The notes: generated from the letters alone by a model not told the origin. A stretch of 64,000 bases of DNA from Macrostomum lignano (GCA_002269645.1 NIVC01002916.1:1-64000), one strand, 5' to 3'; positions 19,501 to 22,500 are shown, counted from the stretch's first letter. Numbers and translations: made by a program.

Positions 19501-22500
19501 GGGGGCACCAAAGCTACTGCAAGGGGGCATCAAAGCTACTGCAAGGGGGCACCAAAGCTATCTGGCCGCACCCTCTCCTTTTCTATTGGGTAAGTTTTGC
19601 ATGGAATTATTAGTGAGAAAATATCAATATGCAAATTTTGTTATGCAACAAAATATGAGCATTTAGCCGCCCCCAATCGAACACTTAAGTCTGCTAGAGT
19701 GGTCTAAGCTAGCAGCTGGCTAGGTTAAAGCAGACAGGTCACAACAGAAGAGGCTATGCAGGGGGGCGGCCTCAGGCGAGCCGAGAGGTGCTGCCTTACT
19801 TTGATGTAGCCGGTGCTATCGATCAGCAGATTCTCAGGCTTCAGATCCCGATAAATCAGGTCTAAGCTGTGCAGGTACTCGAAACCGAGCACGATTTGAG
19901 CACCGTAGAACCTCGAGTGCGGCTCGCTAGCAGCATGTGACAGGGGGGCGACACTTGAGCTCTCAGTAACTCTTTCACATAGACACTACTTACAGTAAGC
20001 GCTATGGAAAATCTAATGACAAATGACAAAACAAAATCCAAATAGATAAGTAACTGAAGCCTCTCAGCTCGTGAACGGGTATGCAATTTTGTGATAAACA
20101 AAGGTAAATGATTATTAATAAGCAATGCCAATTTGTCAGGGTTGTCCTGTGACGAACAAGCTCTATAATATTATTGAATTAGAAAAACTGCAACCCTGTT
20201 AAAAATCAAAGCTTCTTATTTAAGGCTGGTACTGAGAGTGGAGAGATTGTTATTCTTTAGATTCTGATTAAGCAATCGAAAGCAAATCAGCGATTATGCA
20301 GCCGGTGTGAGATGGCAAAAATTGTGAACTGCTTCCTTCTCGCACTGACAAGGCGGCACCATGGCTGGGGGGGGCGCTTCGGACCGACTCAGACAAGTCA
20401 AAAGTGCAGGTTTAAATTGGGTCACGGACTCCATACGGATGGATTCGAATACAGGAGTCAACTAGGGTCACGGTCAACGAGTGTCAGGGCCACTCAGGTC
20501 ATATCGGGTCAAGGTCAATGTAAGTTTCAAGATAACAGATCAAACCAGCAGTCCTTGGGGTCATCTCGGGACAAGGTCACCAAAATATCAGGCTAGCAGA
20601 TTAGATCACACTCTTTGGGGTCATCCCGGGTCAAGGCCACCAAATTATCAAGATGGCAGATTAGATCACACTCTTTGGGGTCATCCCGGTCAAGGTCACC
20701 AAATTATCAAGATGGCAGATTAGATCACACTCTTTGGGGTCATCCCGGGTCAAGGCCACCAAATTATCAAGATGGCAGATTAGATCACACTCTTTGGGGT
20801 CATCCCGGGTCAAGGCCACCAAATTATCAAGATGGCAGATTAGATCACACTCTTTGGGGTCATCCCGGGTCAAGGCCACCAAATTATCAAGATGGCAGAT
20901 TAGATCACACTCTTTGGGGTCATCCCGGGTCAAGGCCACCAAATTATCAAGATGGCAGATTAGATCACACTCTTTGGGGTCATCCCGGGTCAAGGCCACC
21001 AAATTATCAAGATGGCAGATTAGATCACACTCTTTGGGGTCATCCCGGTCAAGGTCACCAAATTATCAAGATGGCAGATTAGATCACACTCTTTGGGGTC
21101 ATCCCGGGTCAAGGCCACCAAATTATCAAGATGGCAGATTAGATCACACTCTTTGGGGTCATCCCGGGTCAAGGCCACCAAATTATCAAGATGGCAGATT
21201 AGATCACACTCTTTGGGGTCATCTCGGGTCAAGGCCAACAAAATATCAGGATAGCAGATTAGATCACACTCTTTGGGGTCATCCCAGGTCAAAGCCACCA
21301 AATTATCAAGATGGCAGACTAGATGAATGACTCAAGCCTGTGCTTAGCGCTCGAAGGGAATATTAAATTGAGAAGCAAAGCCGGTGAGCCAAATGCAATC
21401 AGGAGAGGGTGATGAAAATTTTTAAACAAACGCAACCCTCAATAAAAATTGGTAATCTGTAGCGGCAAAATTTCTAGGTTACAAAAACGGCTCCGATTCT
21501 TGGAAAGAGTAAATTAAAACAAATAAACCTTAAGAAATCCATCAGCGTTAATGAGAATATTCTCTGGCTTGAGATCCCTGTACACCAAGTCCAGATGGTG
21601 CAGGTACTCAAACGCCAGCACAATTTGGGCCCCGTACAGGCGGGATACGTCCTCGCTGGAATACGTGAGCGAATAATTAACAGGTTGATTGATGAAACCA
21701 GCAGAGCTGAATGACATTTCACAAAGAGATTATGGCGTCACTAAATACTGCACTTGAGAGATAAAAAACAGGAGAAAAGCAGACTTCTCCTCTTTTGCCA
21801 TTATGGAACAACAAATCTCAAAAGGTTTGACGATTGAGCAGCCGAAAGAGGAGCATCACAAGCACAGAAAACCACAAGCACAGAACACCACAAGCACAGA
21901 ACATCACAAGCACAGAACACCACAAGCACAGAACACCACAAGCACAGAACATCACAAGCACAGAACACAAGCACAGAACACCACAAGCACAGAACACCAC
22001 AAGCACAGAATACCACAAGCACAGAACACCACAAGCACAGAACACCACAAGCACAGAACACCAAAAGCACAGACCACCACAAGCACAGAACACCACAAGC
22101 ACAGAACACCACAAGCACAGAATACCACAAGCACAGAACACCACAAGCACAGAACACCACAAGCACAGAACATCACAAGCACAGAACACAACAAGCACAG
22201 AACACCACAAGCACAGAACACCACAAGCACAGAACACCACAAGCACAGAACACCACAAGCACAGAACACCACAAGCACAGAACACCACAAGCACAGAACA
22301 CCACAAGCACAGAACACCACAAGCACAGAATACCACAAGCACAGAACACCACAAGCACAGAACACCACAAGCACAGAACATCACAAGCACAGAACACAAC
22401 AAGCACAGAACACCACAAGCACAGAACACCACAAGCACAGAACACCACAAGCACAGAACACCACAAGCACAGAACACCACAAGCACAGAACACAACAAGC

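Follow-up and report, generated by a model that had tools for sequence, protein, structure and literature searches.

Can one gene for protein kinase A's catalytic subunit (PKA-C) in the flatworm Macrostomum lignano supply two versions of the catalytic core? The question is raised by a 64,000-nucleotide stretch of the M. lignano genome (GCA_002269645.1, NIVC01002916.1:1-64000; "the window" below means this whole stretch), which carries a PKA-C gene on the minus strand at 16372-30873 (BOX15_Mlig032677g1/g2) with two neighboring 127-nt exons, 5A and 5B, that encode the same segment of the protein. We conclude, with a probability of roughly 0.7, that this is a tandem exon duplication whose two copies are spliced as alternatives, and that the window gene can probably make two slightly different enzymes. 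The evidence that carries this reading is the reading frame itself, the deposited products of M. lignano and the retention of the same exon pair in three old paralogues.

Two exons for one segment of PKA-C

A tblastn search of the window with human PRKACA placed the gene from about 29092 down to 16375 on the minus strand, and the exons were 62-100% identical to the human protein. When compared with PDB sequences using phmmer, the product matched PKA-C alpha chains over residues 7-356 (E = 1.6e-198), with the glycine loop, the activation-loop motif and the C-terminal FxxF all present in the alignment; as judged by this alignment, the gene is a true PKA-C (PRKACA/PRKACB orthologue group). An eight-exon model that includes 5A translates, residue for residue, into the deposited protein P0241 (PAA54401.1/PAA56370.1, 356 amino acids), whose locus (L003, NIVC01002916.1) corresponds to window positions 40873..6372 at 100% identity. 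The exons and the intron between the two copies are as follows.

Exon 1, 30873-30813, minus strand: exact translation to P0241
Exon 2, 29091-28901, minus strand: exact translation to P0241
Exon 3, 23368-23270, minus strand: exact translation to P0241
Exon 4, 23177-23095, minus strand: 83 nt, ends ...TTC AG before donor gtacgc
Exon 5A, 21655-21529, minus strand: A-type (divergent), 127 nt, phase 1; part of the GenBank product
Intron 5A-5B, 21528-19927, minus strand: 1602 nt, with a 60-bp tandem array (12.9 copies) at 20555-21324
Exon 5B, 19926-19800, minus strand: B-type, canonical; 127 nt, phase 1; outside the annotated product at the window locus
Exon 6, 18050-17955, minus strand: 96 nt, DFG motif and activation loop; common acceptor for 5A and 5B
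Exon 7, 17554-17282, minus strand: exact translation to P0241
Exon 8, 16512-16372, minus strand: exact translation to P0241

The tblastn search placed PRKACA residues 140-183 in the window twice, once at 21657-21508 with E = 2e-14 and once more at 19928-19797 with E = 1e-19, a double hit that is no product of chance. A search across the window for second copies of other exons or for alternative first exons found none. Reading the DNA confirmed what a first-pass annotation of the window had described for both exons, namely their coordinates, 127-nt length, identical phase and intact splice sites. Each exon starts with the single base that completes the Ser139 codon begun by the last two bases of exon 4, and continues for 42 codons. 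Exon 5A runs from acceptor ttccag through C GAG GAC ... CTT AAG to a weak donor (gtttat), and 5B from acceptor gctag through C GAG CCG ... ATC AAA to a strong donor (gtaagg). Both encode helix E through YRDLKPEN to beta8 and, as had been noted, differ at 12 of 42 residues (30/42 shared), with 62% identity at the DNA level.

All four possible junctions with the flanking exons (23095>21655, 21529>18050, 23095>19926 and 19800>18050) are in frame. Inclusion of A and B together leads to a stop 30 codons into 5B, and a direct junction of exons 4 and 6 reads AGG TGA, an immediate stop. The claim that including both exons or neither shifts the frame was therefore borne out, and exclusivity in productive mRNA is forced by the reading frame, as either event results in a premature stop.

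The GenBank annotation of the assembly goes back to a genome-guided transcriptome from RNA sequencing (RNA-seq), for which StringTie and TACO were combined with a de novo assembly (Wudarski et al. 2017, PMC5730564), so that junctions 23095>21655 and 21529>18050 rest on transcript data. The 5A form is expressed, as the RNA-seq-derived annotated product is identical to the 5A model. It had been expected that gene predictors would miss one of the two exons; one is indeed absent from the annotation of the window locus, but it is the canonical exon 5B and not the divergent 5A.

Consequences for the catalytic core

In the alignment to PKA-C alpha, the exchanged segment comprises PKA-C residues 140-181, covering helix E, the catalytic loop, beta7 and beta8. 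Going from B to A (bovine/human numbering), P141D, H142V and F145L alter the start of helix E, S159H and I163V lie beside the catalytic loop, L172I falls in strand beta7, the beta7-beta8 turn is also altered, and Y179F and I180L lie in beta8. The catalytic residues were said to be intact in both exons, and Y164, R165, D166, K168, E170 and N171 are the same in A and B. Residue L172 is a catalytic-spine residue beneath the adenine ring, and I163 lies directly before the regulatory-spine residue Y164. Substitutions at L172, at I163 and in the turn between beta7 and beta8 would presumably modulate dynamics or the handling of nucleotides and leave activity in place. At the level of function, the A and B enzymes are predicted to show modest differences in kinetics or in their interactions with regulatory subunits or inhibitors.

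The exon pair in three old paralogues

M. lignano has three old groups of PKA-C paralogues: the window type (Mlig032677), L001 (Mlig002500/001428, product P0124) and L002 (Mlig033349/001504, products P0125 and P0245). With exon 5 left out, the synonymous divergence (dS) between the window gene and L002 is 0.50, against 0.91 for the window gene and L001 and 0.99 for L001 and L002, and the ratio of non-synonymous to synonymous divergence (dN/dS) is ~0.04. An A-type exon lies upstream of a B-type exon in all three loci, and every copy is open and has AG/GT sites. Compared to the B exon of the window, two differences are found in L001 and one in L002, and pairwise differences place no amino-acid change in window 5B since its split from L002. 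Residues L/I145, I172, F179 and L180 are present in all A exons and in no B exon.

Comparison of the paralogues gave a dN/dS of 0.02-0.03 for B-B and 0.09-0.19 for A-A. The latter value, obtained for a check that the first-pass annotation had proposed, corresponds to purifying selection on exon A across three old paralogues, and by these ratios both A and B exons are under purifying selection. In a neutral simulation of a 127-nt copy (substitutions only, run to the observed A-A divergence), the open reading frame and AG/GT sites were kept in 7-18% of trials, and YRDLKPEN was also kept in at most 0.3%. Taken together, the intact pair in three old paralogues, the signature of selection and the simulation therefore indicate that the duplication predates the paralogue splits and that both copies have been kept by selection. 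The deposited products contain exon A for the window type and L001 and exon B for L002, and both exon types are therefore spliced into M. lignano mRNA. A near-identical second gene copy (L004) has exons that are identical to those of the window or carry one synonymous change, but is uninformative as a test of neutrality because the introns flanking 5B are identical too.

The middle of the L002 A exon (L002 20239-20365) carries B-type residues and codons (S159, I163 and CGG for R165), which suggests either relaxed constraint or gene conversion. In addition, the A and B copies of any one locus agree at residue 147 (position 8 of the exon; G/G, A/A and G/G). Both patterns hint at occasional gene conversion between A and B.

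Probable use of exon 5B in the window gene

The first-pass annotation had held that the gene makes two kinases; the A product is deposited, whereas a B-containing product of the window locus was not found. Several observations weigh against alternative use of both exons at this locus. Neither the predicted window B isoform nor the isoforms of the two paralogues with the exons swapped were returned by an exact look-up in a collection of 15 billion proteins, and a fragment search with a 102-residue query spanning exons 4-5B-6 returned no window-type fragment. A single isoform is deposited per paralogue, so that labor may be partly divided among the paralogues, and the L002 A exon has accumulated six residue changes, against two for window A, since their split (~3x faster). 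Furthermore, the introns offer no visible switch: sensitive blastn between the exon 4-to-exon 6 regions of the three paralogues recovered the exons only, with a few bases at exon edges, and a search of the same paralogues for conserved complementary intron elements yielded inverted repeats that were locus-specific and at chance level, with none in L002.

Much of this would follow from a division of labor, in which the pair is old but the window gene and L001 use only A and L002 uses only B, with window 5B unspliced or rarely spliced. The single deposited isoforms (A-only for the window locus and L001, B-only for L002), the missing swapped isoforms and window-type B fragments, and the faster evolution and B-like central residues of the L002 A exon all point in that direction. 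We nevertheless regard it as unlikely, as the two genes annotated with A (window and L001) have B exons that differ at only 2/42 residues, with a dN of 0.042 compared to 0.034 for the rest of the gene at a gene-wide dS of 0.91, window B is unchanged in amino acids since the split from L002, and B has a consensus donor at every locus; in so long a time, an exon out of use would have decayed. Absence from the protein collection is itself weak evidence, because GenBank holds one coding sequence per locus. The 5B form would thus also be made from the window gene, because B is as conserved as the constitutive exons.

The opposite concern, raised in the first-pass annotation, was that exon 5A could be a decaying pseudo-exon. 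Its donors are weak in the window (gtttat) and in L001 (gtttca), and the non-synonymous rate of A is 4-7x that of the rest of the gene. However, 5A is an exon of an RNA-seq-derived deposited product, is intact in three old paralogues at a dN/dS of 0.09-0.19 where neutral retention occurred in at most 0.3% of simulations, and is identical in the near-identical copy L004. A decaying 5A is accordingly extremely improbable, and the annotation and the selection analysis together refute it. We therefore retain alternative splicing of a tandem exon pair as the preferred reading of the locus.

How the choice between exons might be made

The A donors are off-consensus in all three paralogues (gtttat in the window, gtttca in L001 and gtaatc in L002), whereas the B donors follow the consensus (gtaagg, gtaaga and gtaaga, respectively), and the A acceptor is ttccag in all three. 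The A-B intron is 1602 nt long in the window gene, which makes steric exclusion unlikely, as against lengths of 317 nt (L001) and 355 nt (L002). Choice by competing RNA pairing between docking and selector sites, as in Dscam, was set aside, as conserved complementary intron elements were not found. A 19-nt, 84% complementary pair (21413-21431/18076-18094) was also considered as a switch and rejected. It lies ~100 nt downstream of 5A and ~30 nt upstream of exon 6, where pairing would loop out 5B, but it is AT-rich, at chance level and unconserved in the paralogues, and by our estimate about one perfect 12-bp core such as it contains is expected by chance in 5.2 kb.

The most economical model would be splice-site competition, with the good acceptor and weak donor of A set against the poorer acceptor of B and its consensus donor. 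As regards the donors, this pattern is kept in three of three paralogues. Cell-specific trans-acting factors would presumably tip the balance between A and B, and transcripts that include both exons or skip both would be removed by nonsense-mediated decay.

Multiplication of the same exon in molluscs

The protein comparison, of which the best 120 full-length matches were listed, supported the notion that the same exon has been multiplied in molluscs, in gene models and loci of both bivalves and a cuttlefish. Among the matches listed, bivalve gene models (Mytilus coruscus, Pinctada, Mya) carry the segment twice in succession, and some automatic models (P0126-P0128) string two copies together wrongly. 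The listed RefSeq isoforms of Dreissena contain either the canonical type or a second type (VLVLEYLHHLDIMY); of the other bivalve isoforms listed, those of Mizuhopecten and Ostrea are type 1, and those of Mytilus galloprovincialis, Saccostrea and Argopecten are type 2. At the Mya arenaria locus (L007, CP111024.1), the same flanking exons enclose three 127-nt exons, all in phase 1 and with AG/GT sites; their order is upstream divergent copy (L007 51773-51899), canonical, second type. The upstream copy is used by none of the 120 listed proteins and is absent from the cuttlefish locus.

In the cuttlefish Acanthosepion pharaonis, two 42-codon copies of the segment (compared at the level of the segment, splice sites aside) are found at the same place, canonical then second type, the latter 95% identical to that of Mya. 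Presence of the pair in both clam and cuttlefish therefore indicates that the mollusc pair predates the split between bivalves and cephalopods. The second-type signature VLVLEYLHHLDIMY...LL[VL]D is shared by six bivalves and the cuttlefish, and Macrostomum A lacks it.

Tandem copies of the same exon between the same flanking exons are thus common to the bivalve and cephalopod PKA-C loci and Macrostomum. The two systems differ in copy number (three in Mya, two in the cuttlefish, two in Macrostomum), in signatures, as those of the molluscs are unlike the flatworm pair, and in exon order: canonical then type 2 in molluscs, divergent A then canonical B in three of three Macrostomum loci.

Origin of the flatworm pair

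A single copy of the exon lies between the same flanking exons in Echinococcus granulosus and Helobdella robusta, the two intermediate genomes compared (n=2), and for the nemertean Tubulanus the RefSeq isoforms listed are all of one exon type. An exon tree was built by neighbor-joining with bootstrap from the 42-residue segments, which at 42 sites has low resolution. The mollusc second type came out as a separate clade (bootstrap 0.90). Macrostomum A in no case grouped with Macrostomum B or with the mollusc second type, grouped with the Mya upstream copy in 2% of replicates, and fell near cestode and trematode exons weakly (~0.3).

The Macrostomum and mollusc pairs are most likely separate duplications of the same exon, because of their signature residues, their exon order and the single-copy taxa in between; orthologous genes have commonly gained exon pairs of this kind in parallel, as has been documented (PMC9741552). 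The first-pass annotation had instead proposed an old spiralian arrangement, that is, one early-spiralian duplication that gave rise to both Macrostomum A/B and the mollusc cluster, followed by losses in cestodes, leeches and others. It is true that the exon multiplied in the two phyla is one and the same, down to its 127-nt length and its phase, and that the Mya upstream copy shares ENILI and the ..DG turn with Macrostomum A and also lies upstream of the canonical exon. However, this scenario must accommodate single copies in Echinococcus and Helobdella and one type in the listed Tubulanus isoforms, a tight mollusc type 2 clade (0.90) with signature residues that are absent from A, bootstrap support of only 2% for a grouping of A and the Mya upstream copy and of zero for A and mollusc type 2, a reversed order of canonical and divergent exons, a cuttlefish locus without the third copy, and the frequency of parallel origins in such genes (PMC9741552). 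The tree of A- and B-type exons, which had been suggested as a check, likewise did not group Macrostomum A with mollusc type 2 on its 42 sites. A common spiralian origin is therefore quite improbable, and separate duplications remain our preferred explanation.

A more tentative proposal, which we put forward as possible but doubtful, is that the A/B pair dates to an early flatworm, would be older than the genus Macrostomum, and that A is the counterpart of the only exon of parasitic flatworms. Echinococcus and Paragonimus share V150, H/Y159, V163 and I172 with the A-type exons, although the grouping is weak. If true, tapeworms and flukes would have lost the pan-animal exon B and would run on the "alternative" core, while Macrostomum still switches.

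Comparison with known splicing of PKA-C

Protein kinase A catalytic subunit is a textbook protein kinase, and, to our knowledge, a switch inside its catalytic core was described in Aplysia and has received little attention from then on. The Aplysia californica gene is reported to have alternative internal cassettes, A1 and A2 (Beushausen et al. 1988, Neuron 1:853). Aplysia would resemble Macrostomum in that one PKA-C gene carries alternative copies of a ~42-residue catalytic-loop exon. One copy per mRNA, giving two catalytic subunits, is reported for Aplysia, whereas in Macrostomum exclusivity follows from the reading frame. The A1 and A2 enzymes reportedly show modest differences in kinetics and in how R subunits regulate them. 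Aplysia and the other molluscs belong to a different phylum from Macrostomum, and the signature of their variant exon is absent from Macrostomum A.

The splicing of C. elegans kin-1 and of vertebrate PRKACA/PRKACB likewise diversifies PKA-C from one gene, but those variants alter the N- or C-terminus, whereas the Macrostomum exons alter the catalytic core. The mutually exclusive exons of PMC9741552 resemble the Macrostomum pair in being homologous neighbors of equal length; they are used one at a time, and the events compiled there are ancient, conservative in core residues and often parallel in orthologues of distant animals. The Macrostomum pair differs in that it swaps the catalytic loop and the catalytic-spine strand of an AGC kinase, and "PRKAC" is not mentioned in that work. 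Repeats of the segment were also seen in models from Ixodes scapularis (P0121), Ostertagia (P0135) and Oppiella (P0207), where it occurs two or three times; these were rejected as candidate alternative exons, as they look like assembly or prediction artefacts (the copies are identical in Ixodes and Ostertagia).

A search of the searchable literature found no report of an internal alternative exon in flatworm PKA-C or of the third bivalve copy, and two surveys of PKA-C evolution describe variation at the termini and leave internal alternative exons unmentioned. Already known are the kind of event (Aplysia, 1988), the bivalve RefSeq isoforms and the A isoform of the window gene in GenBank. The flatworm exon pair is thus a real and unreported case of a known kind of splicing, and probably arose by parallel duplication.

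A flatworm used as a regeneration model has its own version of the switch, long kept in three paralogues, and clam and cuttlefish, as distant molluscs, each keep the mollusc version. Retention in flatworm and molluscs therefore makes exchange of helix E, catalytic loop and beta7-8 look like a recurrent, selected form of tuning. For M. lignano, knock-down, expression and antibody work on "PKA-C" should allow for isoforms and for three paralogue groups.

Further features of the gene and the window

Intron 2 has a GC donor instead of GT (28895-28900, minus strand; AAG then gcgagt), and without this GC-AG intron the model would not reproduce the deposited protein exactly. In exon 1 (30813-30873), the annotated N-terminus has LGN where mammalian PKA-C starts with MGN. 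The Gly of the MGN start is normally myristoylated in PKA-C; here it is internal (position 8), and N-myristoylation is therefore not possible from the annotated start codon. The N-termini of the L001 and L002 paralogues are extended in a similar manner. A third near-identical gene copy on another contig (P0243, BOX15_Mlig032677g3) has a frameshifted C-terminus that corresponds to the +1 frame of exon 8, owing either to an assembly error or to a damaged copy.

Six of the seven introns of the A model contain at least one tandem array, including a 16-bp unit x76, GACA x130 and a 60-bp unit x13, as well as 20-, 22-, 29- and 32-bp units. The introns of the paralogues are much shorter and cannot be aligned with those of the window. 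Upstream of the gene, satellite-like arrays are built of 30-bp x94, 12-bp x74, 17-bp x133, 13-bp x183 (99% identity) and 29-bp x106 units. The arrays are located as follows.

Intron arrays: 16573-17207, 17709-17832, 18518-18997, 19001-19560, 20555-21324
Intron arrays, continued: 21857-23063, 23470-23991, 25149-25593, 26695-27620
Satellite-like arrays upstream of the gene: 35122-38232, 41634-42525, 44277-46595, 47195-49568, 50223-53375, 58736-59222

These satellite-like arrays upstream of the gene account for the extreme skews in AT and GC that the window shows in its composition profile.

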